The notes under the pieces: model-generated
What the model was told of the DNA's origin: nothing
The model's input: only the letters and a program-made list of their open reading frames with translations
The model's database searches: none
Part shown: positions 1,885 through 56,700 of the stretch, piece by piece
How positions within the stretch are numbered: position 1 is the first letter of the stretch
Layout: every line of letters begins with the position of its first letter
Source of the DNA: Mobula birostris
Lineage: Eukaryota
Direction of reading: 5' to 3'
DNA: 64,000 nt
NCBI RefSeq assembly: GCF_030028105.1
Contig: NC_092379.1
Location: 28,017,821-28,081,820, forward strand
Position numbers and translations under genes: made by a program

Positions 1885-2799
1885 TCATGATGAGATGAAG
1901 TATCTGATAAATTGTTATAATCGAAATTATTTATTTAGTTATATGCTTGGTAGGGTACTTATACTTACCTCATTGTCAACAGAACTATATATCTACCTGT
2001 TTGTCTACGGTATCATTTGTTTATTTATTTTCTAAATAGCTTCATAATTAGTTATTTACTGACCTTTTTAGGTGTTAATTCTTTTAGCTATTTGTGTGAC
2101 TTGCCCAGTGTTGTTTATTTATTACCTGATAATTATTTATTTATGAATTATTTATTCAAAAAACGAGGTAGTCGTTCAGTACAAAACTGTAAAATGTTGG
2201 CCACAACTTATGATCTATCACACTCCCTTTTGGACTTCTGGGGAAAAAAAAAGAGCAAGGTCGACATGGTAGATAAAAACCGCTTGATTACCTTAACATA
2301 TTACTGAGAATTAACTTGAAGGTATTTTCCAGCTGATCGATAGATTTTGCAATACATATATATAAAGTGGCGGGGGGGGGGGGGCAACAACAACAGGGAA
2401 GGAAATGTAAGTTTGGTCCAGTTAGATTCATTTCCCTACTGAGTTGCGTTCACGATCATTACATTTGGGACGCTGCTATGTACTGATACAAACACATTCT
2501 TTTTTTTTTTTCTCGCGTGTTCCTTATTATAGCTAATAATAGATGAAGGAAGACACACTTTTTCTACTTTTATCCACACATTAAACTTGTTTTCCTCTTT
2601 TTCTGAGTTTTTGAGATAGAATGTTTCGTCAATTAGAAAATGAAACACTCACGAGGCCCACGGGTATTTTTTTTCATGCTCCACATCTGCCGGAATTTAT
2701 TTCCTACCTCAGACAAAATATGAACCCGGTGATTAAAATTGCTCCACATCGCGTTAGGCGACATTATTGGAGCGAAAACAACATATTTCACTGTGCAAA

Positions 2800-5700
2800 A
2801 AAGCGGCCAGTGAGTGAGTGGGCCAGTGAAGGAGTGGAGCTTTGACGCATTGACTTGAGAGGCTTCGCGATAAGAGGCGGAGGACAAGCTTGCTCGCAGT
2901 TAGTCTTTACAGTGCCTCCTGAGATGGTGATGTGCCTCTCATGTGAGATGTGGCAGTCTTGGATGACGCCACTGTCCCGCAGAGTCATATCTGACAGAAG
3001 TGCATACGGTTGGGCGATCTGGAAGACCGTGTAAGGAATCTGGAGCAGCAGTTGGATGATCTTCGACTCATAAGGGAGAATGAGGCAGTCATAGATCAGA
3101 GCTACAAGGAAGTAGCCACACCTAGGCTGTCGGAAGCAGGTCGTTGGGTGACAGTCAGAGGGGGGAAAGTGAAGGTGAGCAGACAGGTAGTGCAGAGCAA
3201 CTCAGTAGCCATTCTTCTGAATAATAAGTTAACTGTCCTGCATACTGTTGGCGGGACGGCCGACCAGAGGTGAGCCACGGTGGCAGGGCCTCCGGCACTC
3301 AGCCTGAGCCAGTGGTGCAGAAGTGTGGGACGGAGAAGAGGAGAGCTGACGTTATCGGAGACAGTATAGTCCGGGGAGCAAACAGGAGATTTTCTGGGCG
3401 TGATAAGGACACCCGCATGGTTTGTTGCCTCCAGGGTGCCAGGGTCCGGGATGTCTCTGACCGGGTGCACGACATCATGGTACGAGAGGGAAAGCAACCA
3501 GAAGTGGTGACACATGTTGGGACCAACGACATAGGCAGGAAGAGGGATGAGGTCCTGAAGTGTCAGTTTCGGGAACTAGGCAGAAGGCTGAAGAACAGGA
3601 CCTCAAGGGTGACGTTCATAGGATTGCTACCAGTGCTGCATGACAGTGATTGTAAGAATTGGAGGGATGACAGTTCAATACATGGCTGAGGCGTTGGTGT
3701 AGGGAGCAAGGTTTTAGATTTTTGGATCATTAGGATCTATTCTGGGGAAGATGGGACTTGTACAGATTGGATGGGTTTCACCTGAACTCGAGGGAGAGCA
3801 ATATCCTTGCAGGTAGTTTCGCTGCCATGGTTCGGGAGGGTTTAAAATAATTTGAAAGCGGGATGGGACCCAGAGCGATAGAGCAGTGAAAGAAGTGCAT
3901 GGAGTAAAGCCAGATCTAACATATGGAGAGGCTTTGAGGAAAGAAAAGCAGAATAAACGGAGTAAAGACAGTAAGGTAGAAGGACTGGAATGTGTGTACC
4001 TCAATGCAAGAAGCATTAGGATGAAAGGCGATGAACTGAGATCTTGGATACATACATGGAATTATGATGTAGTGGCTATTACAGAGACTTGGCTGGCACC
4101 AGGGCAGGAATGGATTCTCAATATTCCTGGATTTCAGTGCTTTAAAAGGGATAGAGAGGGCGGAAAAAGTGGAGGAGGTGTGGTATTACTGGTCAGGGAT
4201 ACTATTACAGCTGCAGAAAGGCTGGGTAATGTAGCAGGATCATCTTTTGAGGCAGTATGGGTGGAAGTCAGGAACAGGAATGGTGCAGTTACTCTTTTGG
4301 GGATATTCTATAGGCCCCCTAGTAGCAGCAGAGATACTGAAGAGCAGAATGGGAGGTAGATTTTGGAAAGGTGCAAAAATAACAGGGTTGTTATCATGGG
4401 TGACTTTAACGTCCCTAATAATGATTGGCACCTGATTAGTTCCAAAGGTTTAGATGGGGCGGAGTTTGTTAAGTGTGCCTAGGATGGATTCCTGTCACAG
4501 TATGTGGACCGGCCGACAAGGGGGAATGCCATACTAGATCTAGTACTAGGTGATGAACCGGGTCATATCAGAGATCTCTCAGTGGATGAGCATCTGGAGG
4601 ACAGTGACCACCGCTCCTGGTCTTTAACATTATCATGGAAAAGGATAGGATCAGAGGGGACAGGATTTATTTTAATTGGAAGGGCAAATTATGAGGCTAT
4701 AAGGCTAGTACTTGCGGGTGTGAACTGGGATGATGTTTTTGCAGCGACATGTACTATGGACATGTGGTCGATGTTAAGCGATCCCCTGCAGGATGTTGGG
4801 GATAAATTTGACCGGTGAGGAAGATAAGGAATGGTAGGGTGAAGGAACCATGGGCGCCAAGTGAGGTGCAAAATCTAGTCAGGTGGAAGAAGGCAGCACA
4901 CATGAGGTTTGGAAAGCAAGGCTCAGATGGTCTATTGTGGAATATAGGGAAGCAAGAAAGGAGCTTAGGAAGGGTTGAGAAGAGCAAAAAGGTGGCATGA
5001 GAAGGCCTTGGCGAGGAGGCTAAAGGAAAACCCCAAGGCATTCTTCAAATATGTGAAGAGAAAATGGATGACAGGTGTGAAGGTCGGACCGTTTAGAGAT
5101 AAATGTGGGAAGATATGTCTGGAGGCTGTGGAAGTGAGCGAGGTCCTCAATGAATACTTCTCTTCGCTATTCACCAATAAAAGGGAACTTGATGATGGTG
5201 AGGACAATATGAGTGAGGTCGATGCTCTGGAGCATGTTGATATTAAGGGAAAGGAGGTGCTGGAGTTGTTAAAATACATTGGGACGGCTAAATCCCCGGA
5301 GCCTGACGGAGTATACCCCAGGCTGCTCCACGAAGCGAGGGAAGAGATTGCCGAGCCTCTGGCTAGGATCTTTATGTCCTCGTTGCCCACGGGAATGGTA
5401 CCGGAGGATTGGAGGGCGGCGAATGTTGTCGCCTTGTTCAAAAAAGTTAGTAGGGATAGTCCCAGTAATTATAGAGCAGAGAGCCTTACGTCTGTGGTGG
5501 AAAAGGTGTTGGATAAGATTCTTAGAGATAGGAACCCTGGGTATTTAGAGAATAATGGTCTGATCAGGGACAGTCAGCATGGCTTTGTGGAGAGCATATC
5601 GTGTCTAACAAGGCTGATAGAGTTATTTGAGGAAGTGACTAGGCACACAGAAGAGTTTAGTGCAGTGGATGTGATCTATATGGACGTTAGTAAGGCATTT

Positions 5701-6835
5701 AACAAGGTTCAACACGGTAGGCTTATTAAGTAAGTAAGAAGGCATGGGATCTAGGGAAGTTTGGCCAGATGGATTCAGAATTGACTTGTCTGCAGAAGGC
5801 AGAGGGTCTTGGTGGAGGGAGTACATTCAGAGTGGAGGATTGTGACTAGTGGTGTCCCACAAGGATCTGTTCTAGGAGCTTTACTTTTCGTGATTTTTAT
5901 TAATGACCTGGATATGGGGGTAGAGGAGTGGGTTGGCAAGTTTGCAGACGACACAAAAGTTGGTGGTGTTGTAGATAGTGTAGAGGATTCTCAAAGATTG
6001 CAGACAGACATTGATTGGATGCAGAAGTTCGCTGAGAAGTGGCAGATGGGGTTCAACCCGGAGAAGTGTGAGGTGTACACTTTGGAAGGACAAACTCCAA
6101 GGCAGAGTACAAAGTATATGGCAGGATACTTGGTAGTTTGGAGGAGCAGAGGTATCTGGGGGTACAGGACCACAGATCCCTGAAAGTTGCCTCACTGGTT
6201 GATAGGGTAATTAAGAAACCTTATGGGGTGTTAGCTTTCATAAGTCGAGGGATAGAGTTTAAGAGTCGCGATGTGATGATGCAGCTCTATAAAACTCTGG
6301 TTAGGACACACTTGGAGTACTGTGTCCAGTTCTGGTCAGCTCACTATAGGAAGGATGTGGAAGCATTGAAAAGGGTACGGAGGAGATTTACCAGGATCCT
6401 GCCTGGTTTAGAGAGTATGCATTATGATCAGAGATTAAGGGAGCTAGGGCTTTACTCATTGGAGAGAAAGAGGAGTACAGGAGTCATGATAGAGGTGTAC
6501 AAGATAATTAGAGGAATAGAAAGACTGGATAGCCAGCGCCGCTTCCCCAGGGCACCACTGCTCAATAAAAGAGGACATGGCTTTAAGGTAAGGAGTAGGA
6601 AGTTCAAGGGGGATACTAGAGGAAGGTTCTTTACTCAGAGAGTGGTTGGTGCGTGGAATGCACTGCCTGAGTCAGTGGTGGAGGCAGATACTCTGGCGAA
6701 GTTTAGAAAGACTATTAGACAGGTATATGAAGGAATTTAAGGTGCGGGGTTATATTGCAGGCAGGCTTTGAGTGTCGGCACAACATTGTGGGCCGAAGGC
6801 CCTATACTATGCTGTATAATTCTATGTTCTATGTT
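2800..6835 (+). mobile_element. Near full-length, inactivated CR1-clade LINE
   Basis: ORF1 has a CxxC zinc finger/zipper remnant (~2926-3110) and an SGNH esterase (VIGDSIVRG, HVGTNDIG). ORF2 has an APE domain (YLNARS, ITETWL, GDFN, DSDH) and RT (GVPQGSVLG, KFADDTK). TTCTATG tail; candidate TSD CAAA; empty site near 47842. Confidence 0.93.
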
Positions 6836-17902: not shown

Positions 17903-18043
17903 NNNNNNNNNNNNNNNNNNNNNNNNNNNNNNNNNNNNNNNNNNNNNNNNNNNNNNNNNNNNNNNNNNNNNNNNNNNNNNNNNNNNNNNNNNNNNNNNNN
18001 NNNNNNNNNNNNNNNNNNNNNNNNNNNNNNNNNNNNNNNNNNN
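17903..18043. other. Assembly gap (141 N)
   Basis: Run of N. Confidence 1.
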
Positions 18044-20119: not shown

Positions 20120-20308
20120 NNNNNNNNNNNNNNNNNNNNNNNNNNNNNNNNNNNNNNNNNNNNNNNNNNNNNNNNNNNNNNNNNNNNNNNNNNNNNNNNN
20201 NNNNNNNNNNNNNNNNNNNNNNNNNNNNNNNNNNNNNNNNNNNNNNNNNNNNNNNNNNNNNNNNNNNNNNNNNNNNNNNNNNNNNNNNNNNNNNNNNNNN
20301 NNNNNNNN
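20120..20308. other. Assembly gap (189 N)
   Basis: Run of N. Confidence 1.
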
Positions 20309-22825: not shown

Positions 22826-25609
22826 AGGGGCAGGACTGGCAGCTAAATATTCCAGGGTTCCGATGTTTCAGATGTGATCGAGGCAGAGGAATTTAAGGTA
22901 GGGGAGTGCATAGCTTGTTAGGGAAAATATTACAGCAGTGCTCAGGCAGGGCAGATTAGAGGGCTTGTCTACTGAGTCCTTGTGGGTGGAGCTGAGAAAC
23001 AGGAAAGCTATGGCCACTTTAGTGGGATTGTATTACAGACCACCCAATAGTCAAAGAGAATTGGAAGTGCAAATCTGCAGACAAATAGCAGGCAACTGCA
23101 GGAAACATAAAGTTGTGGTGGTAGGTGATTTTAATTTTCCATATATTTATTGTGTCTCCCATACTGTTAGGGGTCTAGATAGTTTAGAGTTTGTAAAATG
23201 TGTTCAGGAAAGTTTTCTAAATCAATATATAGAGGGACCAACTAGAGGGGATGCAATATTGGATCTCCTGTTAGGAAACGAGTTAGGACAAGTGACAGAA
23301 GTCTGTGTAGGGGAGCACTTTGGTTCCAGTGATCATAACACCATTAGTTGCAACTTGATCATGGACAAGGTCCGATCTGGTCCTAGGGTTGAGGTTCTTA
23401 ACTGGAAGAAGGCCAAAGTTGAAGAAATGAGAAAGGATCTAAAAATCGCGGATTGGGACAGGTTGTTCTCTGGCATGGATGTGATCGGTAGGTGGGAAAC
23501 CTTCAAAGCAGAAATTTTGAGAATGCAGAATTTGTATGTTCCTGTCAGGATTAAAGACAAAGTGAATAGGAATAAGGAACCTTGGTTCTCAAGGGATATT
23601 GCAACTCTGATAAAGAAGAAGAGGAAGTTGTATGACGTGTATAGGAAGCAGGGAGTAAATAAGGTGCTTGAGGAGTATAAGAAGTGCAAGAAAATACTTA
23701 AGGAAGAAATCAGGAGGGCTAAAAGAAGACATGAGGTTGCCTTGGCAGTCAAAGTGAAGGATAATCCAAAGAACTTTTACAGGTATATTAAGAGCAAAAG
23801 GATTGTAAGGGATAAAATCGGTCCTCTTGAAGATCAGAGTGGTCGGCTATGTGCGGAACCAAAGGAAATGGGGGAGATCTTAAATAGTTTTTTTTTTTTT
23901 TGCGTCTGTGTTTACTAAGGAAACTGGCATGAAGTCTATGGAATTAAGGGAAACAAGTAGTGAGATGATGGAAACTGTACAGATCGAAAAGGAGGAGGTC
24001 CTTGCTGACTTGAGGAAAATTAAAGTGGATAAATCCCCGAGACCTGACCGGGTGTTCCCTCGGACCTTAAAGGTGACTAGTGTTGAAATTGCGGGGGCCC
24101 TGGCTGAAGTATTTAAAATGTCGCTGTCTACAGGTGAGGTGCCGGAGGATTGGAGAGTGGCTCATGTTGTTCCGTTGTTTAAAAAAGGATCGAAAAGTAA
24201 TCCGGGAAATTATAGGCCAGTAAGTTTAACGTCGGTAGTAGGTAAGTTATTGGAGGGAGTACTAAGCGACAGAACCTACACGCATTTGGATAGACTGGGA
24301 CTTATTAGGGAGAGTTAACTTGGCTTTGTGCGTGGTAGGTCATGTTTGACCAATCTTTTGGAGTTTTACGAGGAGGTTACCAGGAATGTGGATGAAGGGA
24401 AGGCAGTGGATATTGTCCACATGGACTTTAGCAAAGCCTTTGACAAGGTCCCGCATGGGAGGTTAGTTAGAAAAATTCAGTCGCTAGGTATACGTGGAGA
24501 GGTGGTAAATTGGATTAGACATTGGCTCGATGGAAGAAGCCAGAGAGTGGTGGTAGAGAATTGCTTCTCTGAGTGGAGGCCTGTGACTAGTGGTGTGCCT
24601 CAGGGATCAGTGCTGGGTCCATTGTTACTTCCCATATATATCAACGATCTGGATGATAATGTGGTAGAGTGGATCAGCAAGTTTTCTGATGATACAAAGA
24701 ATGGAGGTGTAGTAGACAGTGATAAAGGTTTTTAGAGCCTCCAGAGGGACTTGGACCAGCTGGAAAAATGGGCTAAAAAATGGCAGATGGAGTTTAATAC
24801 TGACAAGTGTGAGGTATTGCATGTTGGAAGGACAAACCAACGTAGAGCATACAGGGTTAATGGTAAGGCACTGAGGAGTGCAGTGGAACAGAGGGATCTG
24901 GGAATACAGATACAAAATTCCCTAAAAGTGGCGTCACAGGTAGATAGGGTCGGAAAGAGAGCTTTTGGTACATTGGCCTTTATTAATCAAAGTATTGAGT
25001 TTTAGAGCTGGAATGTTATGATGAGGTTGTATAAGGCATTGATGAGGCCGAATCTGGAGTATTGTGTTCAGTTTTGGTCAGCAAATTACAGGAAGGATAT
25101 AAATACGGCTCAAAGAGTGCAGAGAAAGTTTACAAAGATGTGCCGACACTTGAGAAACTCAGTTACAGGGAAAGGTTGAATAGGTTGGGACTTTATTCCC
25201 TGGAGCGTAGAAGAATGAGGGGAGATTTGATAGAGGTATATAAAATTATGACGGCTATAGATAGAATGAATGCAAGCAGGCTTTTTCCACTGAGGCAAGG
25301 GGAGAAAAAAAAAAAACAGAGAACATGGGTTTAGGGTGAGGGGGGAAAAGTTTAAAGGGAACATTAGCGGGGGCTTCTTCACACAGAGAGTGGTGGGAGT
25401 ATGGAATGAGCTGCCAGATGAGGTGGTAAATGCCGGGTTTTTTTTTTTAACATTTAAGAATAAATTGGATAGATACATGGATGGGAGGTGTATGGAGAGA
25501 GATGTTCCGTGTCCAGGTCAGTGGGACCAGGCAGAAAATGGTTCGGCACAGCCAAGAAGGGCCAAATGTCCTTTTACTTTGCTGTAGTTTCTATGGTTTC
25601 TATGGTTTC
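22826..25609 (+). mobile_element. 5'-truncated CR1 ORF2 (APE part plus RT), different subfamily
   Basis: ORF fragments 22938-25334 with VVGDFN, GSSDHN, GVPQGSVLG, KFSDDTK; TTTCTATGG tail. Confidence 0.92.
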
Positions 25610-26610
25610 TTCTGCACCATTTCCATGGTTTTCATTTCCGTCCGGTACTGAGGTGACCAGAATTGAGCACAAAACTCCAAGTGCGGTCTGACCAGGGTCA
25701 TATATAGCTGCAACATTACCTCTCGGCTTTTAAACTCAATCCCACGATTGATAAATGTCATTTGCGCCGTATGCTTTCTTAATAATAGAGTCAACCTGCG
25801 TAACAGTTTTGAGTGTCCTATGAACTCGGACCCCAAGATACCTCTGATCCTTCACACTGCCAAGAGCCTTGCAATTAGTGTTATAAGCTGCCATCATATT
25901 TGACCTACCAAAATAAGCCGCCTCACACCTATTTGGGTAGAACGCCATCTGCCACTTCTCAGCCAAGTTTTGCATCCTATCATTGTCCAGCTGTAAAAGC
26001 TGACAACCTCCGCAATATGGACAACACACCCAACTTTGCGCCATCAGCAAATTTACACACCCAGCCTTGCAATTCCTCATCCAGGTAATTTATAAAGCCC
26101 AAAAGGGTAGGGGTCCTAGAACAGATCCCTGAGGCACACCACCCGTCACCAGCCTCAATGCAGAATATGACCAGTCTGCAAACACTGTTTGCCTTCTGTG
26201 GGCAAGCCAGTTCTGGATCCACAAAGCAATATCCACTAGGATGCCATAGCTCCTTACTTTCTCAATAAGCCTTGCATGGTGTACCTTATCAAAGGCCTTG
26301 CTAAACTCCATATGTACTACATCTACGGCTCTAACTTCATCAATATATTTAGTCACGTCTTAAAAAACAAAAAAAAAAAAAACAATCAGGCTCGTAAGGC
26401 ATTTGTCTTTGACAAAGCCATGCTGACTATTGCTAATCATATTATGCCTCTCGAAATTTTCTTAATCCGGCCTCTCAGGATCTTCTCCTCCGTCCCTACT
26501 TCCAAGAACCCTAAAACTATGCCCTCTCGTGCTAGCCATTACAGCCCTGGGAAAAAGCCACTGACTATCCACACGAACAATGCTTCTCATTAACTTGAAC
26601 ACCTCTACGT
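25610..26610 (-). mobile_element. CR1 RT portion (right part of the split element) plus an extra 3' fragment
   Basis: MEFSKAFDKV, GVPQGSVLGP, IEFKSREVMLQLY on the minus strand. Confidence 0.85.
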
Positions 26611-27029
26611 AGTGCTTAATCATCTTACTTTATCGTGGCGAGTCTCTGGGTCCAAAAAAGATCTATATGGTTATTCAAAGTAGAAACCACTGGAGCTGTA
26701 TCAGCTTGGGTTACTCCTGGAAATATTCTGCAGCAGAAAATTGCATTCGCAATGGCCATGAGATTGACATCGACGACAGAACTTTTCTGTACCTCGTCTG
26801 GTGAAGAAAGCCATTGAAACAGAAACATGGAAAAATAAATCTAACACCGGCGGTCTCGCTACAAGTAACACGTGTAGAATGATTGTAAACAAGTTGTGGC
26901 AGCTGAAGCCTAATTATACGAGGACTAAACAATCAGATGGCTGATCGAAGGGACAATAAATATCACCGGGTACATGCATCATCGTTGATGTTTTTTGGCA
27001 GAGTTTGCCGGGGAAGCGTCGGTAGAATT

Positions 27030-29400
27030 TGACGTGTGCAATAAAACGGATTTGATGAGGGGACTCGAGGTAAAGGAGCGATTAGGAGGTAGTATGATCA
27101 TATGTTAATCATACTATAATCTTATATAATAATATCATAAGTTTTAATCTATAATTTGAGACGGAGAAGGGAAAATCGGAAGTGTCAGTATTACAGTTGA
27201 ACAAAGGAGACTAACGAGCCATGAGGGAGTAGCTGGCCAAAGTTGACAGGAAAGATACCCTAGCAGGGATGGCAGTGGGACAACAATGGCAAATATTTCT
27301 GGGAATAATACAGAAGGTGCAGGATCAGTACATTCCAAAGAGGAAGAAATATTCTACGGGGAGTAAGGGGCGAACGTGGATGACAAGGGATGTCAAGGAC
27401 AGTATAACAATAAAAGAGAAGAAGTATAATAAAGCAAAGATGAGCGGAAATCTAAAGGATTAGGAAGCTTTTAAAGAGCAACGGAAGATAACTAATAAGG
27501 CAATACAGGAAGAAAAGATGAGATACGAAGGTAAGCTAGCGAAGGATATAAAGGAAGGTAGTAAAAGCTTCTTTAGGTATATGAAGAAAAAACAAATAGT
27601 TAAGACGAAAGTTGGGCCCTTGATGACAGAAACGGGTGCTTTTATTATGGGCAACAAGGAAATGGCAGTCGAGTTGAACAAGTACTTTGGATCTGTCATC
27701 ACCAGGGAAGACACAAACAATCTCCCAGAAATAATACTGTCCAGAGGACATACAGTAACGGAGGAATTGAAGGGAATTCACCTTAGGCAGAAAGTAGTGT
27801 TGGTTAGGCTGATGGGAATGAAGGTTAATAAATCCCAAAGGCCCGATGCTTCGTATCTTAGGGAACTTAAGGAGATGTCTCTAGAAATCGTGGAACCATT
27901 GGTACTCATTTTCCACATGTCGATAGATTCAGGGTCAGTTCCTGAGGATTGGAGGGTAGCTCATGTTATCCCACTTTCTAGGAAAGTAGGGAGAGAGAAT
28001 AAAAGGGAATTATAGACCAGTTAGCCTGACATCAGTGGTGGGGAGGACTCTGGAGTCAATTATAAAAGATGACACACCGTCACGTTTGGATAGGAGTAAC
28101 AGGATCGGTCCGAGTCAGCATGGATTTACGAAGGAGAAATCATGCTTGACTAATCTTCTGGATTTTTTGAGGATATAACTATGAAAATGGACAAGGGAGA
28201 GCCAGTGGATAGAATGTACCTGGACATTCTGAAAGCCTTAGATAAGGTCCCACATAGGAGATTAGTGGGCAAGATTAGAACACATGGTATTGGGGATAGG
28301 GTACTGACACGGATAGAAAATTTGTTGGCAAACGGTAAACAAAGAGTAGGGATTAATGGGTCCCTTTCAGAATAGCAGACAGTGACTAGTGGTTTACCGC
28401 ACGGCTTGGTGCTGGGAACACAGCTATTTACAATATATATAACGATTTAGATGAAGGGATTAAAAGTAACATTAGCAAATTTGCAGATGACACAAAGGTG
28501 GGTGGCAGTGTGAAATGTGAGGAGGATGTTATGAGAATGTAGGGTGAATTGGACAGGTTGGGTGAGTGTGCAGATGCATGGCTGATGCAGTTTAATGTCG
28601 ATAACTGTGAGGTTATCCACTTTGGTGCAAGAGCAGGAAGGTATATTACTATCTGAATGGTGTCATGTTGGAAAAAAAAAAGGGAAGTACAACGAGATCT
28701 AAGTGTCCTTGTGCATCAGTAACTGAAAGTAAGCAGCAGGTACAGCAGGCAGTGAAGAAATCTAATGGCATTTTGGCCTTCATAACAAGGGGAGTTGAGT
28801 ATAAGAGCATAAGTCCTTCTGCAGTTCTACAGGGCCCTGGTGAGACCGCACCTGGAGTATTGTGTGCAGTTTTGGTCTCTAAATTTGATGAAGGACATTC
28901 TGCTATTGAAGGAGTGCAGCGTAGGTTCACGAGGTTAATTCCCGGAATGGCGGGCTGCCATATGTTGAAAAATTGGAGTGACTGGCCTTGTATACACTGG
29001 AATGTAGAAGGATGAGATGGATCTGATTGAAATATATAACATTATTAAAAGGATTCGGCACGCTAAAGGCAGGAAACATGTTCCCAATGTTACGGGAGTC
29101 CAGCATCAAAGGCTACAGTTTAAGAATAAGGGGGTCGGCCATTCAGAACGGAGTTGAGGAAAAACTTTTTCACCCAGAGAGTTGTGGATTTGTGGAATAC
29201 TCTGCGTCAGAAGGCAGTGGAGGCCAGTTCTCTGGATGCTTTCAGGAAAGAACTAGATACAGCTATTAAAGATACCGGAGTCAAGGGATATGGGGAGAAG
29301 GCTGGAACGGAGTATTGATTGTGTGTGATCATCCATGATCACAGTAAATGGCGGGGCTGGCTTGAAGGCCCGAATGTCCTAATCCTGCACCTATTGTCTG
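27030..29400 (+). mobile_element. 5'-truncated, frameshifted CR1 ORF2 with 3' end
   Basis: [43 protein letters not shown] and CR1 3' UTR. Confidence 0.9.
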
Positions 29401-30500
29401 AACCCCGCTGGAAGCCCGAGAATTGTTTATTCGTAATGCATAACCAAGCTGCTCCATTTGTCATGCATGCTGGAGCGCAATTTTACCTAGAAACGTATGG
29501 TTATGCGTGTAATATAAGAGCATAGTCAATATTTGGCATTATGGTTGATAACTAGCCGTGTGTACTGAGTTCAGACCAGACTCAAAGCTACATTAACCAA
29601 GACACTGCCTGCAATAACTTCACTAGAAACAAAATAAAAGTTACAAGTGTTTGGGATTACAGATTAAATTGACAACACTTTTTTTTGCCATTGATTTCTG
29701 TTTATCGCTCTTTCTTCGTCTTCAATTACAGTCAGAACCAAGAAAATGTTATCAGTATTTGCCTTCACGTGGTGCTCACATATAGTAAAGGCCATGTATT
29801 TTTTTGAGGAAATAACACCGACAGATTCTGATGTACGTAGAGAGTGAAAGATTCCACGACAAACAGCAGTAATAGAAACATAAACAGTGATGATCCTTAC
29901 CACATTCTGAACATCAGATTTCCAGTTGACATACAGTGGGTTATTGGTGTGAACGACCATAAAAAAAAGCGTTGTTGCTGTATGTACAGTTTTGGTCACA
30001 CTACTAAAGCAATAATATGGTAATTAGAAGGAGGATGCAAAAGCCATTAACTAGATATTCTTGAAAAGCAGGCCGGATGTTCAAAATACACACTGGATAA
30101 CTCCAGGTATTCTTTTTCACTTGATGCAGCTGGCAGAGGAGAGAACTGTTGGAGGTTTATAAGAAATATAAATTACATACTTAGGATAGAACGCTGAAGC
30201 ATTTTCTCCCACTGAAGACTTCTCTAAGCGCTGGTTTAAAGTATGCGAGGAGAGAACGTCAGAGAAGATCAAGTGAGAGATTGTTTTACACAGATGATAT
30301 TTCATGGAGTTAGGAATTGAGACGAAATGAGCGACCGTGAGCTGAAGCCAGCACGGAATAACAATCGTTCAAAGTACACTTTGCTGTTGATAAGGAAACG
30401 GAAATCTTGGAGAGATGTTCGATGAATGCAGGTGGAACGAAATTCCGACTATTGGAACAGCAGTTAGAAGAATATGAGAAGTGAAAGCACATGATTTTAT

Positions 30501-47600: not shown

Positions 47601-49645
47601 CTTATCCACATATTAAACTTGTTTTCATCTTTTCCTGAGTTTTTGAGATAGGATGCTTCGCCAAAACAGAAAATGAAACAGTCACGAGGCCCACCAGTGT
47701 TTACTCTATTCTTTCATTTTTCATTTTGCACACCTACCCGAATTTATTTCTGACCTGAGAGAAAATATGAAACCCATGATTAAAATTGCTCCAACATCGT
47801 CGTTAGGCGACATTATAGAGCGAAAACAACAATTCTCACTGTGAAAACATTCTCAAGAGGCCTGATAATATAATTTTAGTATATTAGCTAACCTTCTGTT
47901 TTTGCTGCATGTCTCTTTAACAACTATTAATTTTAAGACCTGGATCTTCGTTCCACTCATTCTGCAGTTTACACCGGTCCGTAACAGTTTGGAACAGATT
48001 ATTAGGTATATGATAAATAGCATGAAGTCATCTTTGCAATGCACAGTTACTGTTTGATCCTGTGCGTGTTTGTTTCACATTCTCATTCATTTATGAAATT
48101 AAGGACGCGGCATGCCGCCGTTGTCATAGATAAACATAACGTGTACAGTGCCACTGACTTTGAACGTGTACTAATCGTGGCCATGCAGTATTCTTCTACT
48201 CAATTGTATTTAATGCTATACAAACTCACTCCATATTGCAGCAACAAGTTTGATAATGGGTCCTGCGTCTTCTTCCACTGTGGTAGTCTAACAAACTACA
48301 TTACATTTACTGAGCACTTCATGGCATTCACAAAGTTCAGATAGCCAGCTGCAGAAGTAGTAGAAGAACGTGGACATAAAAACGCTTCATACTATACCAG
48401 GTGCTAATGTATTAGGCTGAGTTATTGGACAAACTATTTTTTTTATTCCCATACAGAAAGTGCGATATACAGCATTACCTTTCCTCGCAATGAGTAACGT
48501 GAATCTTTCTTTCTTTCTTTCTTTTTAAATCTTTTTATTGAATAAGTCTAGAAAAAGATAAGCCATTTTGGCACTAATACACTGTTAGAATATAATAAAA
48601 TTCCAGGAGATATTAATACAGAAAAAAAGTGATACAAACAATGTAATTTAAACATAACATACTAAGGTAACATAATAGTATACTAATATACTATATATAT
48701 CAATAGAGAAAAGGGAAAAAAAAACAAAAAATAAAACCCCACCGTGCAACTAAACTAAAAGCAACGCAAAACAATGGGCTAACTTGGAACCAAGTAGAGT
48801 TAAAGAACTTAAAATCACGTCCTCAAACCCGACCTCCATTAAAAACAGTAAAAAAAAACAAGAAGGGTATATAAATATGGAGCAAAAAAGAGAAGGAAAA
48901 AAAATTACATTAAATGAAAAAAATGAATAAAAGATCTCCAGGTCTGTTCAAATTTAAGTGAGGAATCATAAAGATTACTTCTAACTTTCTCTAAATTCAA
49001 GCATAATATCGTCTGAGAAAACCAAAAAAGGTGGTTGGAGCATTAAACTCTTTCCAATGTTGTAAGATACATCTTTTCGCCATTAAAGTAAGAAATGCAA
49101 TCATTCTACGGGCTGAAGGAGAAAGATTACTGGAAATTTTAGGTAGTCCAAAGATAGCAGTAATAGGGTGAGGGGAGATATCTATATTCAATACCTTTGA
49201 GATAATATTAAAAATGTCTCTCCAAAAAGTTTCCAGAGTAGGCCAAGACCAAAACATACGAGTTAAAGAAGCTATCTGCCCTGGACAGCTATCACAAAAA
49301 GGATTAATATGAGAATAAAAGCGAGCTAATTTCTCTTTGGACATATGTGCTCTGTTAACAACTTTAAATTGAATTCGGGAATGTTTAGCACAGATAGAGG
49401 ACGTATTGATTAATTGTAAAATCTGCCCCCAGTCATCCAAGGAAATGATAGAACCCAATTCCTGTTCCCAATCTACCCTAATCTTATCAAATGGAGCTTT
49501 CCTAAGTTTCATAATAATATTATAAATCATAGCCGATGCACTTTTCTGACATGGATTAAGGTTAATTATAGTATCTAAAATGTATGTAGGAGGAAGCATT
49601 GGAAAGGAAGAGAGTATAGTACTTAGGAAATTTCTAACTTGCAGG

Positions 49646-50344
49646 TGTAAGGGGGTTTCGATTTTTATGTTACTGCGGAGGTTAATTAAAATGGCGTTTT
49701 TGTTATGTTTATCTGTGGAATGCGGCTTTGTTGTGCTTTAACGCTGAGAAAGTTTGCGCTAGCAGCTTATTGTGGTTTAGTGTGTGATAAGAGAGTGCTA
49801 TTAACCAATTGGGATAGTTGTTATGGTTTTGGTGTATTTGAAGATACTGTATGCGCGGGGTTTTGGGGCAGAAGGCGGGAGAGCGAGACAGAGGATGGAC
49901 CAGGTGCTGTGAGTCCGCTAACGGGGTCGGACCCCGAGCGGGACGTTCGGCGAGGAGACGGAGACGGAGACGGACTCGTGTGGAGCGTCTGGTCGACCAC
50001 CGTTGTTGGTCCCAGGCGGCCGGTCGAGGTGGTCCGAGGGGTCACAGGGTGAAGAAGAAGGTCCTTGAGCTCCAACGGTTTTGTGCACGAAGAGATTGAA
50101 CTTTGATAAGTGTGGCGCCTTTTATTTTCCTTTTATATTTTATTCTCTTTTAATTATATAGTTCCAGTAATATCTATAAACTGTAAATCATTTAATCGTA
50201 TCTGGTGTATTGTCTGTTATTTGGGCGGGGTGGGGTACCTCACACAGCATCCACACAAACGAATTACCCAGTTTGGCGGGGCCGAGGCTGTTTCCCTAGA
50301 CGACAGCGAGCCGAGCGACTCTGAGGGTAGCCGGGGGGGCTACA
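49646..50344 (+). repeat. 5' LTR
   Basis: TGTAAGGGGG...GGGCTACA; six substitutions versus the 3' LTR found by eye. Confidence 0.95.
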
Positions 50345-51056
50345 TTGTGGGGGCTTTGTCCGGGATTGAGTCTGCTGGTATGCTGTGTGGGTGCCCTGTT
50401 TAAATCTGTAATGTGTGTCTCTGTGGGTTATTTGCTGGTGATTGCTGTATGTGTTGTGGGCGCGGTCTTTGTTCGAGCAGGCTGGCATTGACGAGTTAGA
50501 GGTGGCACTCGGGGCTGTCCATGCAGTTGGGAGAGAGAGGAAAGAGTGGTCTGATTTGGAGGTAGAGTCTGCGAATAAATGTTCTAGCTCTGGCAGGCTC
50601 CGCCTGGCACTGGGGATAGTGTCCACCCCAGGAGGGGCGGAGACGTGTGAGACGTGGGCGGAGCTGATCTCTCAGTTGTTAGATGAGTGGCAGTGCTTGG
50701 TTGAGGGAGAGCGACAGGGATTGGTTGAAAGTTTGAGTAGGCGGGCTGGTGACGGTGTGAGAGCTGTCAGGTTCACTTACACCGGAGTGACAGCTGTCAG
50801 TTATTTGAAAGAGGGGGGAAAGTTTTCAGTGTGTCTTCTCTGGCGAGGAGGGCGGCTAAATTGCTTGTAGTGCCAGGCGGATCATTTCAGGGGATCAGTT
50901 GTTCAGCTGATCAGAGAGGGGTCGGGAAACTTAGTGGAGGCCCAGTGAGGGGAACGGCTTGGGGTCTCTGGGGAAGCACGTTCCCAGCAATGTACCACTG
51001 AACTTCCGCAAGGAAAAGACCCTATTCCTGAAGACTTAGAGGGGCCACGCCCCAGG

Positions 51057-52772
51057 GTGTCGTTATGGATAGAGGGAAGTGATGCTAAAGCTATCCTCGA
51101 CCCCGGGGCACAGATCAAGTTGTTTTACAGTTCGTTTTACAACCGGTGTCTGAAGCATTTATCCTTGACAACCGCAAGGGCACCGGAGACTTTGGGTACT
51201 AGTGGCAGTAGTTATCCAGAAGATGATGATTGGTTAATGACCCTGGAGTTCATGGAGGCATTTTCTGGGCACCCAGTGTGTCGAGTTGCTTCTGAGGACG
51301 TGTGTAGCAGCCTTGAGCCAGTACCGAATTTAAATGAGACCCAGCGGTGGTACGGCTTGGGGAAAGTAGCTGAGGGTGAGACCCTCTTAGTAGACGCTCC
51401 GAACCACCACGTGGGAGGGGAGTTGACCGCTGAAGACACCTCAGTGAGAGAGAGGTCGCGGCAACTAGACCCTGGCGGCGTGGAAGATGAAGGCAGCGTG
51501 TGTGTGGATGATGCGACGTGGTTTAATGTGCTGCATCTGAGGGGTGGATGTTGCCAGATCGTGAGGAGTGCGGCTGTTGAGCCGAAGATGGCCTTTATTA
51601 GTTCCCTAGGATTCTTCCGATCCGAAAAGATGCCCAAGGGCATATCCGGAGCCCCTGCATCCTTCCCGCGGGGCATGAGGAAAACCGTGGGGGAAGTGAA
51701 GGTGTGTGGAGTTTTGACGTATGTGGATGACCGCCTAGAGCTTGGATTCGCCTGGGGAGACTATGAGGCGAGGCGAGTGGCTGAGCCCGGGCGACCGAAG
51801 CGAAGTGTCAAATGTGGAGGAGTTTTTGGCCGGAGGAGTTTGGTGCAATGTGAGGAAAATGACCCGACATACCAGTTGAACTTCCTGGTGTTGGGACAGA
51901 CGGTGGTGGACCGGGGGATGGAAACCCAGGTCGTCAATCTGAATGAGACACAGGGAAGAGAGGAGATTTGCATCACACTGCGGTCATATACTGACGAATT
52001 AATCCAGCGAGAAGAAACAATGACCCACCTTCGAAGGGATCAGCAGAAACTCAAGACGTCCATTCAGAATAGATTGGAAGATTTACAAGTTGGGGAAGAT
52101 CAAGGAAGTGTTCTGACTAAGGTCAACAGAAAACCGAGAGCCCAGGGAGGGGAGTTTGACTACACTCCCGAGGAGGTAAAGAAATGGAGGACAGATCTCG
52201 GAGAAGGGAGGCGGACGCTTGAAAGGAACCTGAAGGTGACAATCGTGAGTTTAAATGAAGTGGAAAAACTGAAAGTCGACCTGGAAGACGTCCTCAGGAA
52301 GAAACAACCGGAGGCTGAACAATCTTTAACTGCTGCTTTTCAAGTCAGGGTGGAAGAAGCTGGTGGGGTAACTGCGTCCCAGATTGAGATGGCCAGGAAC
52401 CCTGAGTCAGAACTGCTGAGGCTGTGGCGAGAGTTGAAGGAGTCCCCGAAGAAGCTGACGTCTCGACTGCAGGAGGCTGAAGGGGTAGCCCCAGCTAAAT
52501 GTTTCAGTTTGGAGAAACTCAAACAGCAGCTACCGATCGAAGGAATGAGGAAGAATACGGATTCGAAGGATGATGTGCTGCACATGTGGTACATGCTGCC
52601 TTTCGCTAACTTCCCCGTGATTGAGGAAGAGACCTTTGGCCCTTCTCCCACTGAGTCAGGTGTAGTGTGGAGGGCTAGCTGTGGGCAGTCTGAGTTACGG
52701 CAGGATCAGGAAGGAGGAGAGGCGGGGCCCCGGCCACGGGACAGGGGGCTCCGAGCTGTAGTGGTGGCCTGA
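51057..52772 (+). CDS. 571-aa chimeric ORF: degenerate protease + RT remnant + myosin heavy-chain rod-like segments
   Basis: Uninterrupted ORF; aa ~1-30 protease-like, aa ~177-225 RT-like, aa ~266-494 align to sarcomeric myosin rod motifs. Expression is unknown. Confidence 0.55.
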   Translation: MSLWIEGSDAKAILDPGAQIKLFYSSFYNRCLKHLSLTTARAPETLGTSGSSYPEDDDWLMTLEFMEAFSGHPVCRVASEDVCSSLEPVPNLNETQRWYGLGKVAEGETLLVDAPNHHVGGELTAEDTSVRERSRQLDPGGVEDEGSVCVDDATWFNVLHLRGGCCQIVRSAAVEPKMAFISSLGFFRSEKMPKGISGAPASFPRGMRKTVGEVKVCGVLTYVDDRLELGFAWGDYEARRVAEPGRPKRSVKCGGVFGRRSLVQCEENDPTYQLNFLVLGQTVVDRGMETQVVNLNETQGREEICITLRSYTDELIQREETMTHLRRDQQKLKTSIQNRLEDLQVGEDQGSVLTKVNRKPRAQGGEFDYTPEEVKKWRTDLGEGRRTLERNLKVTIVSLNEVEKLKVDLEDVLRKKQPEAEQSLTAAFQVRVEEAGGVTASQIEMARNPESELLRLWRELKESPKKLTSRLQEAEGVAPAKCFSLEKLKQQLPIEGMRKNTDSKDDVLHMWYMLPFANFPVIEEETFGPSPTESGVVWRASCGQSELRQDQEGGEAGPRPRDRGLRAVVVA

Positions 52773-53042
52773 GTGAGAGAGGAGTTGGCAAGCAGGCCCG
52801 AGGTATCCCTAGTAGTGTCTGAGCCTTGTGGGTTTAGGTGAGGGGGTACGGAGGTCTCAGAGGGTTAATAAGCTCCCAGATAGGTTGGCCTATTTAGCGC
52901 CCGTGGGACGGGAGTAAGGTCCACTGTTTGGGGAGCACTGTCACTGTGTGTATCTGTGTATGTGTGTGTTGTGTGTCTGTAGGACTGGGTGGCGAGTTAT
53001 TTAGAAGTCATGAGGACATGACTTTATTTGGTGGGGGGAGAG

Positions 53043-53741
53043 TGTAAGGGGGTTTCGATTTTTATGTTACTGCGGAGGTTAATTAAAATGGCGTTTTTGT
53101 TATGTTTATCTGTGGAATGCGGCTTTGTTGTGCTTTAACGCTGAGAAAGTTTGCGCTAGCAGCTTATTGTGGTTTAGTGTATGATAAGAGAGTGCTATTA
53201 ACCATTTGGGATAGTTGTTATGGTTTTGGTGTATTTGAAGATACTGCATGCGCGGGGTTTTGGGGCAGAAGGCGGGAGAGCGAGACAGAGGATGGACCAG
53301 GTGCTGTGAGTCCGCTAACGGGGTCGGACCCCGAGCGTGACGTTCGGCGAGGAGACGGAGACGGAGACGGACTCGTGTGGAGCGTCTGGTCGACCACCGT
53401 TGTTGGTCCCAGGCGGCCGGTCGAGGTGGTCCGAGGGGTCACAGGGTGAAGAAGAAGGTACTTGAGCTCCAACGGTTTTGTGCACGAAGAGATTGAACTT
53501 TGATAAGTGTGGCGCCTTTTATTTTCCTTTTATATTTTATTCTCTTTTAATTATATAGTTCCAGTAATATCTATAAACTGTAAATCATTTAATCGTATCT
53601 GGTGTATTGTCTGTTATTTGAGCGGGGTGGGGTACCTCACACAGCATCCACACAAACGAATTACCCAGTTTGGCGGGGCCGAGGCTGTTTCCCTAGACGA
53701 CAGCGAGCCGAGCGACTCTGAGGGTAGCCGGGGGGGCTACA
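53043..53741 (+). repeat. 3' LTR
   Basis: Direct repeat of 49646-50344. Confidence 0.95.
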
Positions 53742-56700
53742 CAGGTATCTAAAAAAAATGTATTCTTGATAAATTATATTTATTAGATAATTGTTCAAAA
53801 GACATAAGGGAACCATCTAAAAATAAATCCAAAACCCGTGAAATACCCTTAGCCTTCCAAATTTGAAAAGCACGATCCGTAAAAGAGGGAGGAAAAAATA
53901 TGTTACCTAAAATAGGAATCGCTAGCCCAAATTGAATAAGATCAAAACATTTTCTGAATTGAAACCAAATGCGTAAGGTATATTTAACTATCGGGTTAGA
54001 TACCTGTTTGAGGCGTTTCAAATCAAAAGGAAGAGAGGAACCTAAAATAGAGCCAAGTGTATAGCCCTGAACAGATTGTAATTCCAATGCTACCCATTTG
54101 GGAATGGATAGTATATCCTGGTCAAGTAAACAAAATTTCATACGTCGAATATTAATTGCCCAATAATAGAATCTAAAGTTAGGTAATGCTCAACCTCCAT
54201 CTCTCTTAGCTTTCTGTAAATGTATTTTACCCAGTCTTGGGTTTTTATTTTGCCAAATAAATGAAGAAATTTTTGAGTCAACTTTATCAAAAAAAAGATT
54301 TTGGAACAAAAATCGGTAATGCCTGAAATATATATAAAAACTTTGGCAGAAAAAAAACATCTTAACTGCATTAATACGACCAATCAAAGTTAAATATAAA
54401 GGAAACCATTTAGATGAAAGTTGAATAATATGGTCAATTAAGGGTAAAAAGTTAATCTTAAATAAATCTTTGTGTTTACAAGTAATTTTAATCCCAATAT
54501 ATGAAAAATAATTATTAATCAATTTAAACGGAACGTTATGATATAAGGTAAGTTGTTTATTGATCGGGAAAAGTTCACTCTTACTAAGATTTAATTTATA
54601 ACTTGAAAAAAGACCAAATTGTGCTAATAGCTCTAAAACGGCAGGGATTGATTTTTGAGGATTAGAAATATATAAAAGTAAGTCATCAGCATAGAGTGAT
54701 ATTTTATGGGACTTTAAGCCCCGAGTTATCCCAGTAATATCTGGAGATTCTCGAATGCCAATTGCAAGAGGTTTTAATGCAATATCAAATAATAAAGGAC
54801 TAAGAGGACAACCTTGTCGAGTGCCTCGAAAAAGAGGGAACAAAGGTGAGCTTAGAGAGTTAGTACGGACCGAGGCCACAGGAGAATGATATAACAATTT
54901 GATCCAGGATATAAATTTCGAGCTAAAATTAAAGATTTCAAGCACCTTAAATAAGTAAGACCATTCTACTCTATTAAAAGCTTTCTCAGCATCTGAAGAG
55001 ATAACACACTCAGGAATATTTTGTGAGGGGGTATAAACAATATTTAACAGTGTGCGAATGTTATAAAAAAAGTAACGACCTTTAATAAAACCCGTTTGGT
55101 CTTCCGAAATAATAAAAGGGAGTACTTTTTCTAATCTGTTTGCTAATAACTTAGAAAAAAAAATAATAAAGATATTGGTCTATAAGATGCACATTGAGCA
55201 GGATCTTTATCCTTCTTTAATATTAGAGAGATTGACGCTCTATTCAAAGATTCGGGAAGTTTACCAAGTTTTAATGAAGCCTCGAAAACCCTACAGAACC
55301 AAGGGATTAATGAATGTGCAAAAGATTTATAAAATGCTACGGTAAACCCATCAGGGCCAGGAGCTTTCCCCAGGTTCATAGAGGAAATAACATTCTTAAT
55401 CTCATCAGAGGTAATGGAAGTATCTAGCATGGAAGACATATCCTGTGAAATCTCAGGGAAGTCTAGGTTATCTAAAAAAACATTCATATGTTTAGAGTCT
55501 CGAGGAGACTCTGATTGATATAAGGAAGAATAAAAATCAAAGAAGGTTTGATTAATCCCCGCATGATTAAGTATCAGTCGATCATTTTGTTTATAAATCT
55601 GATTAATTTGAGATTTAGCATAGTTAGACTTCAATTGGTTAGCCAACAGTTTGCCAATTTTGTCACTGTGTACAGAAAATTCACTGCTTGTTTTCTTTAA
55701 TTGGTTTACAATCAAGGGCGAAAGTAATAAACTGTGTTCCATTTGAAGTTCAGTTCTTTGTTTATATAACTCCTCAGAGGGAGCTGTAACATATTTCTTA
55801 TCAATTTCCTTAATCTTGTCCACAATTACCAACTCCTCCTGCTTCAGCTTCTTCCTCAAAGCAGCAGAATACGAGATAATCTGACCACGAATATGAGCTT
55901 TAAAAGTATCCCAAAGAATGTTCACAGAAATATCCTCTGTATAGTTGATTGTAAAAAAAAAAGATCAATCTGTTCATTCATAAATTTAACAAAGTCCGAA
56001 TCCTGAAGCAACAGCGAATTAAAACGCCATTGTGTATTATTTTGTGTATTGGCCTGAATTTTAATAGAAAGCTTAAGTGGAGCATGATCCGAAATGGTTA
56101 TAGAGTCATAATCAACGTGAATCTAAAGTAATCTGCAACATCAGGTGTACAAAGAATGTTAATTTATTATAAAGTAGCGGTAATTACTCTGAGATGTGTC
56201 ATATTATTGTTATCATATATTACCTCATTACCATATATTACATACTACCTTATATACTAAAACCCCGTTCAGCAGTTCCAAGAACTGCGCTCACGTTGCA
56301 ATAACAGTTTGACCCCATTCACTTTTACGTCTGTTTTTATTTTTCCACATCAAATGCACTATAGTAGATCGGCGTTCAATCAAAAAATAATTCCAAATTC
56401 AGGTAAACAAGTTTTTGAATCAGAATGTGATAGTATGTGAGACACTGTAACTCAAGGGATGTGATCTGCACTTTCGAAAACCACGTTTTCGAGAACGTCA
56501 GAATTTGAACACATCATCTTTTTAGAAGCTTCGTGATGGTCATACAATCTATGTTCAATACGATTGATTTTCATTTTTTTCCATTATGCCTTTGTTAATG
56601 GGGTTATTATTTACTCCAGATACCGCAAGATTTTATGATAATTCAAAATCTCTTTACTCCTGCCGATGGTGAACGATACAGCCAACAGTCTAAGGCCAGG

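Follow-up and report, generated by a model that had tools for sequence, protein, structure and literature searches.

Capture of host transcripts by long terminal repeat (LTR) elements is a known process, and the Gypsy-type LTR element considered here, located in a 64,000-nucleotide stretch of the genome of the ray Mobula birostris (NC_092379.1, positions 28,017,821 to 28,081,820 of the forward strand; hereafter the window), appears to be a case of it. The locus raises a simple question: what is the heptad-rich sequence that occupies the part of a long open reading frame (ORF) in which ribonuclease H (RNase H) and integrase would be expected, and how did it come to be there? The original prediction, made from the letters of the window, had described it as a spliced fragment of a myosin heavy-chain rod captured by the element. 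According to the analysis reported below, the element is, with a probability of about 0.82, a non-autonomous Ty3/Gypsy-type LTR retrotransposon of batoid rays that carries complementary DNA (cDNA) of a spliced myosin rod and has spread as a multi-species family, the latter extending beyond the single copy first described. The sequence strings quoted at the outset were all found at their places in the ORF, with blocks starting at 52074, 52209, 52347, and 52449 and the YVDD motif of the reverse transcriptase (RT) at 51720–51731.

Myosin Rod Sequence Within an LTR Element

When the 229 amino acids (aa) encoded by nucleotides (nt) 51852–52538 were searched with phmmer against the PDB, only sarcomeric myosin heavy chains were matched, the best being Myosin-4 (6ysy_A, E=7.9e-7), to whose residues 978–1090 query positions 43–155 align without gaps; later blocks match at about 1150–1185 and 1380–1424. 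A profile of the family described in the next section likewise retrieves striated-muscle myosin heavy chains only (E=7.4e-18). Rod positions are given throughout on P0024, a full-length lungfish myosin of the MYH7B type. In an ungapped scan along this protein, ORF aa 308–420 (nt 51978–52316) score 163 at offset 985, against 40–43 at the next-best offsets, which are shifted by multiples of 28 residues, and at most 47 in 500 shuffles; the block covers P0024 985–1097 and 37 of its 113 residues are identical. Three other myosins give the same picture, and two further blocks (nt 52356–52454 vs. P0024 1162–1194 and nt 52452–52541 vs. 1405–1434) score above all shuffles. The native order of the myosin blocks, claimed in the original prediction, is thus borne out by in-register matches.

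Only the rod from about 925 to 1434 is represented in the family, with deletions, and neither the motor domain nor the neck nor a full-length rod is present; on its alignments the segment is classed as a derived rod fragment and not as a member protein of the myosin family. Compared with the rod, the window copy has lost at least four internal pieces, and the internal deletions that had been proposed are evident from fuller copies, which keep more of it. The 5′ limit needed correction: myosin similarity is detectable from about 51918 and not from 51852, and the preceding stretch (ORF aa 255–287, 33 residues) is not myosin-like and was rejected, as are the last 76 residues of the ORF. The collinear sarcomeric matches foreseen for a HMMER search were obtained in the PDB, and those foreseen for Pfam Myosin_tail_1 were not. 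A routine domain scan would have missed the myosin segment, since Myosin_tail_1 finds nothing in the window copy.

The intronless state of the segment was examined by mapping intron sites with tblastn of P0024 on two bird MYH fragments, a hornbill MYH locus and a Dallia locus (L001, L002, and L008 from birds, L003 from Dallia), together with isoform data from the electric ray genus Narcine; L001 and L002 have assembly gaps over rod residues 904–983, and L008 was added as a third bird locus. Myosin introns occur at rod positions 903|904, 984|985, 1043|1044, 1092|1093, about 1122, 1336, and about 1399, with an extra intron at 1014|1015 in the Dallia gene. The ungapped window block 985–1097 crosses 1014|1015, 1043|1044, and 1092|1093 with no insert, and the whole family segment crosses at least seven intron sites. 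In addition, three ray gene models (P0001, P0010, and P0012) each consist of one exon, their gene span being 3 x (aa+1). These alignments support a copy of spliced mRNA, as first proposed. The myosin part of the fullest copies begins at about 925, inside the bird-gene exon 904–984, and ends at about 1434, inside the exon 1399–1460.

A separate observation concerns the rod piece that is missing from the subfamily of the window copy relative to P0002 and P0146. One of its ends falls exactly at the intron site 984|985 and the other inside a bird-gene exon (window ~51975–51978; alignment A1); the former could be due to chance or could reflect splicing at some point in the family's history.

The surroundings of the segment are those of an LTR retrotransposon (Table 1). 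Self-BLAST detects a direct repeat (49645–50344 vs. 53042–53741; 700 nt, 99.14% identity, 6 mismatches) whose LTRs, 699–700 nt long, begin with TG, end with CA and are adjoined on their outer sides by the same four bases, a coincidence expected by chance in about 1 of 256 cases. The run next to the 3′ LTR is 13 nt long and all purine but one T. For comparison with the TGG-initiated stretch that lies 3 nt past the 5′ LTR, ARAGORN detected no tRNA gene in the window. The Gypsy-type assignment made originally stands on this LTR pair, its TG..CA ends, the CAGG duplication, the polypurine tract and an RT match confined to Ty3. The interior measures 2.7 kb, which is far too short for an autonomous element. 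As the LTRs differ at 6 of 700 sites, the copy was inserted recently, very roughly a few million years ago at an assumed, not measured, rate of 0.5–1e-9 substitutions per site per year. In the G+C-rich LTR core (49705–50099; 53102–53472), where a short GGAGAC-type repeat occurs, ORFs of 82–115 aa overlap on both strands; they have no family match and are probably not genes.

Two broken genes precede the myosin part. The gag remnant comprises 142 codons in the same frame as the long ORF, from which it is separated by two in-frame stops, and resembles Pfam PNMA, a gag family of Gypsy type, below the cut-off (E=1.2e-4; 22 bits vs. 25). The pol remnant contains a protease-like stretch with no Pfam-level match and an RT core that is truncated at both ends in the window copy; its aa 187–263 match residues 144–218 of the Ty3 RT (4ol8_A, E=0.028, PDB search), and RVT_1 is matched at E=0.1–0.2. 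Better-kept copies reach E=1.3e-6 for RVT_1, which stays under the Pfam cut-off in all copies, and E=5.6e-11 for the Ty3 RT. The latter value belongs to P0147 of Hypanus sabinus (729 aa), which matches the Ty3 RT over 130 residues in the PDB, MYH7 at E=2.7e-5 in the same protein, and PNMA at its N-terminus. Ty3 was the sole RT matched in the PDB by the window copy or P0147, with no match to a retroviral RT, and through this better-kept relative the Gypsy affinity is, at the level of sequence comparison, firm. The replacement of RNase H and integrase that had been proposed agrees with the Pfam scans, which revealed neither a protease nor an RNase H or integrase family in any copy scanned. Because these families were not detected, the window copy is regarded as a non-autonomous derivative and not as an autonomous Ty3/Gypsy member.

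Table 1. Features of the element and its neighbors in the window (1-based positions in the 64,000-nt stretch).
Feature	Position	Strand	Basis or remark
Target-site duplication CAGG, left	49642..49645	+	Same four bases adjoin both LTR outer ends
5′ LTR, TG...CA ends	49646..50344	+	Self-BLAST
Candidate primer-binding site	50348..50365	+	Position and TGG start only, three bases past LTR
Gag remnant, one broken gene	50442..50867	+	Sub-threshold Pfam PNMA; 62% identity to P0147 aa 21–91
Pol remnant, one broken gene	50949..51917	+	Protease-like stretch, truncated RT core with YVDD
571-aa ORF (pol remnant, myosin-derived part and tail fused)	51057..52772	+	ORF listing
Myosin-rod-derived segment, intronless	51918..52541	+	Collinear with P0024 rod ~925 to 1434
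Conserved 3′ ORF tail	52542..52772	+	Not myosin-like (best score −6), no Pfam match
Polypurine-tract-like run abutting 3′ LTR	53030..53042	+	Read from sequence
3′ LTR, TG...CA ends	53043..53741	+	Self-BLAST
Target-site duplication CAGG, right	53742..53745	+	Read from sequence
Neighboring LINE reverse-transcriptase ORFs	53749..55925	−	ORF layout; RVT_1 E=3.5e-15 at 54190–54942 (−)
Further ORF, LINE-type, left of element	48997–49599	−	ORF layout

A Family of Chimeric Copies in Rays

Relatives of the window copy were sought by a word-indexed and a profile search, by a full HMMER pass over 1.84 billion representatives and by cluster look-ups. The family comprises at least about 33 RefSeq gene-model proteins that share the arrangement gag-protease (PR)-RT remnant-myosin-tail and come from four species of Myliobatiformes: M. 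birostris (7 proteins), M. hypostoma (9), Hemitrygon akajei (2), and Hypanus sabinus (about 15). The closest relatives of the window copy are other M. birostris copies (95–96% identity). The same junctions occur repeatedly, on 6 or more chromosomes in M. birostris and on 11 or more in Hypanus, and Mobula, Hemitrygon, and Hypanus share the upstream RT remnant, the downstream 3′ tail and two rod deletions (alignment A1, tblastn map). Other rod deletions mark subfamilies; P0002, P0146, and P0009, for instance, keep about 40 more rod residues, with myosin similarity starting at about 925. Ten Hypanus proteins at ≥90% identity, including three of 729 aa and others of 632–691 aa, suggest, from their sequences, a recently amplified subfamily. 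The shared deletions offer a marker for dating the family within batoids.

The full HMMER pass found the segment in nothing longer than 330 aa except one true myosin. In the database searches as a whole, true myosins aside, it was carried neither by a protein above 729 aa nor by any that contains RNase H or integrase, so that no autonomous carrier was seen; viral and metagenome contigs, when scanned, yielded no relative. A 54-aa JGI protein (P0152, metagenome contigs L005–L007) that falls into one 90% cluster with Mobula P0001 is bacterial and unrelated, and was set aside as a clustering artefact.

The copies appear in RefSeq under a variety of names (myosin-16-like, putative uncharacterized protein MYH16, myosin heavy chain ...-like, uncharacterized), and the element accounts for these annotation errors, dozens of ray models being element copies or host models that swallowed one. 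Among the models of H. sabinus and M. birostris, P0147, P0015, and P0154 are host-gene isoforms with element sequence (TMEM192, SDHAF3, GSTT2), and are probably annotation chimeras or exonised copies.

Open Frame, Donor Gene and Route of Capture

The frame of the long ORF is open well beyond its annotated start, from 50949 over 607 codons (50949–52769), with no stop in this frame and 41 and 43 in the other two forward frames; about 30 would be expected from composition (P(0) ~1e-13). Compared with P0158 of Hypanus, the window ORF is 57% identical over 487 aligned columns, every length difference is in frame, and the 210 amino acid differences would be expected without selection to entail about 13.7 stop-creating substitutions, of which none is seen (P ~1e-6, both sequences having been noticed for their length, an ascertainment bias that counts against this inference). 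Since decay after insertion only adds stops, the source lineages must have been selected to stay open, which argues that something about translation, or about the protein, was under selection in those copies from which later ones arose. The heptad pattern survives, with hydrophobic residues at 58% of a/d positions and 17% elsewhere. The AlphaFold2 (AF2) model places long helices in the myosin part alone, at a predicted local distance difference test (pLDDT) of 70–86, although overall confidence is low (mean pLDDT 52, insufficient for a meaningful search by fold); the 3′ tail, common to Mobula and Hypanus copies, has a pLDDT below 50 and is predicted to be disordered.

A stop-free chimeric frame in lineages that are only 57% identical prompts the question of why a non-autonomous element should need translation. 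A tentative answer, which we consider rather doubtful, is that the chimeric protein, in which a gag-like N-terminus, remnants of enzymes and a helical rod from myosin are combined, is retained by selection because it serves the element, the rod acting as an oligomerisation or particle-association module by which a defective element rides in the particles of an autonomous partner; in a variant of this idea, one copy may have been co-opted by the host. If the former were true, a vertebrate germ line would contain a “gag-host fusion” that has long lived as a parasite of a Gypsy element.

As to the donor, the Narcine gene model P0149 was the nearest sequence for all copies tested (45–68% identity, 99–124 bits), the identity of copies to MYH7B, MYH7, and MYH4 types being 27–39%. 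The locus in Narcine bancroftii (P0149, P0016, P0164–P0167) has six isoforms and aligns ungapped to rod 974–1124; because one isoform skips exactly rod 1015–1043, a cassette exon, the locus is a gene that contains introns at these same sites. Among full-length myosins, which were searched in order to place the donor, only MYH7B and MYH7 types came up. A donor of the MYH16 type, as anticipated in the original prediction, is supported indirectly by the sequences, the closest non-element sequence being this gene, which RefSeq names MYH16; masticatory MYH16 has been reported to be expressed in shark (PMC11050549). The Narcine gene itself is short (205–254 aa) and alternatively spliced, with a partial rod that jumps from about 893 to about 974, and looks like a truncated or decaying myosin gene.

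These data suggest the following history. In an ancestor, the part of pol that follows the RT core, namely RNase H and integrase, would have been replaced by about 500 codons of sarcomeric myosin rod, copied from the spliced mRNA of a myosin of the type called MYH16 in Narcine and joined in frame to the RT remnant, so as to give one gag-PR-RT remnant-myosin-tail frame between two LTRs. The capture would most likely have occurred by RT template switching between element RNA and co-packaged myosin mRNA, a plausible route. Because it lacks enzymes of its own, the element must be copied in trans by the proteins of an autonomous Gypsy partner, which would recognize its LTRs, primer site and packaging signals. 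The family then diversified, its subfamilies losing different parts of the rod, and came to occupy numerous chromosomes in at least four myliobatiform species.

A number of observations weigh against this account, in addition to the ascertainment bias mentioned above. Pfam Myosin_tail_1 gives no match at E≤1 in the window ORF, and at E≤0.01 it matches 1 of 18 aligned sequences, perhaps the Narcine host gene model. The RT and gag matches of the window copy itself fall under curated thresholds; its LTRs and target duplication have been seen for this copy alone, and the candidate primer-binding site is recognized by position and TGG start. No autonomous partner was identified, and the idea that the gene model P0014 runs into an LTR was rejected, as the match covers 9 residues and is not significant (E=0.4). 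The MYH16 label of the donor depends on naming in RefSeq and on a single Narcine locus. Heptad a/d positions show no deficit of differences between copies (Fisher p>0.08), and there is therefore no sign of constraint on the coiled coil itself.

The same outcome could have been reached by another route, in which the element inserted in or upstream of a myosin gene, a spliced read-through transcript was packaged together with a normal RNA of the element and one recombination restored the 3′ end, much as in acutely transforming retroviruses. This would also yield an intronless, in-frame, helper-dependent chimera, as in the retroviral transduction discussed in PMC4299795, and the missing rod piece that ends at 984|985 could hint at splicing at some stage. 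Both ends of the myosin part, however, lie inside exons of the bird gene, whereas a 5′ junction made by splicing would be expected at an exon border; as the start of similarity is fuzzy, the in-exon 5′ end is a less secure point against this route, which we regard as unlikely, if worth keeping in view beside template switching.

The remaining alternatives fare worse. That the segment belongs natively, as an accessory domain, to an autonomous Gypsy lineage of which the window copy is a deleted derivative is very improbable. Some Ty3/Gypsy elements do encode extra proteins (e.g., CERV of Cer1, PMC10309623, and the additional ORFs of rotifer elements, PMC5408684), and unannotated autonomous elements would not be in protein databases; but the segment runs collinear with a host myosin gene that has introns and is its closest relative, and in the protein searches, true myosins aside, nothing above 729 aa and nothing with RNase H or integrase carried it. 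Domestication of the ORF as a host gene, to which the open frame and the RefSeq gene models, some with isoforms, might point, is harder still to reconcile with near-identical LTRs, a target duplication, a probable position within a LINE and paralogous copies that number dozens in each genome and often differ in their truncations. A processed myosin pseudogene made by a LINE between unrelated LTRs, or a segmental duplication, with no mobile composite involved, would fit a region full of LINE fragments; it has next to nothing in its favor beyond that, given that no poly(A) or long target duplication surrounds the myosin piece, that this piece is internal to the coding sequence, not 3′-anchored, and is fused in frame to the RT remnant and followed by a non-myosin tail, that the LTR pair has its own 4-bp duplication, and that the same junctions recur across chromosomes of both genera (at least 6 in M. 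birostris and 11 in Hypanus). Finally, an ordinary coiled coil with generic likeness to myosin, suggested by the lack of a Myosin_tail_1 match and by off-register BLAST matches all along the rod, can be dismissed in view of the in-register score (163 vs. 43 at the next offset and ≤47 in shuffles), three further collinear blocks at the expected positions and the restriction of matches to sarcomeric myosins both in the PDB and among the 1.84 billion representatives.

The window is rich in repeats, holds no second copy of the element and contains no recognized host gene. From the layout of minus-strand ORFs of long interspersed nuclear element (LINE) type on both sides, the LTR element is probably nested inside a LINE. 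Further ORFs of this type lie at 4975–5730 (+; RVT_1, E=3.4e-4) and 22938–23915 (+; endonuclease Exo_endo_phos_2, E=1.6e-6). Strong positive GC skew (0.22–0.38) occurs at 2001–6000 and 24001–30000, and runs of N at 17903–18043 (141 bases) and 20120–20308 (189 bases).

Comparison with Known Captures of Host Sequence

Acutely transforming retroviruses (gag-onc) are defective, helper-dependent LTR elements in which pol is replaced by an in-frame spliced host cDNA. The ray element resembles them in having host cDNA in place of the pol region, fused to an upstream element protein; unlike them, it is not a retrovirus, its cargo is a muscle structural fragment without known growth function, and it is an ancient resident of the germ line. 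No published description of a myosin-carrying Gypsy family was found in the literature searched, the coverage of which is incomplete and did not extend to Repbase or Dfam, so the original statement that none is described is not contradicted.

Crocodilian endogenous retroviruses (ERVs) have captured host mRNA as well, namely KIT-ligand, and nectin3 in CrocERV31/ERV4 (PMC4299795). Intronless host coding sequence inside an LTR element, occurring in several copies, not confined to a single species and with ORFs apparently maintained, is common to both systems, and in the nectin3 case, as here, host sequence replaces part of the element's own genes. The crocodilian elements are retroviruses that carry whole ORFs of cell-surface or ligand proteins, whereas the ray element is of Ty3/Gypsy type, has an internal coiled-coil fragment fused to an RT remnant, and shows many more copies and heavy erosion.

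Chimeras produced by LTR-mediated retroposition via template switching have been described in metazoans, including zebrafish (Tan et al., 2016, PMC5131818). They too consist of an internal retrocopy of a spliced mRNA flanked by LTR-retrotransposon sequence, often in frame; they are described as young, mostly single and flanked by discontinuous elements, whereas the ray chimera kept both LTRs and transposed across genera. Their signature of template switching is a short microsimilarity that element and mRNA share at the fusion points. Plant LTR retrotransposons with gene fragments and the gag-only, non-autonomous TR-GAG elements (reviewed in PMC13317346) are similar in being non-autonomous, in holding captured host pieces or partial gag-pol and in being amplified in trans, and differ in that the ray host is a vertebrate (an elasmobranch) and in that a single long chimeric frame stays open through remnant and cargo. 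What is distinctive here is the combination of a Ty3/Gypsy carrier in a cartilaginous fish, a structural-protein cargo, a long-lived, transposing family in several species and a conserved chimeric frame: a clear vertebrate case of host-mRNA capture by a Ty3/Gypsy element in which, unusually, the chimera stayed mobile and did not end as one dead retrocopy.

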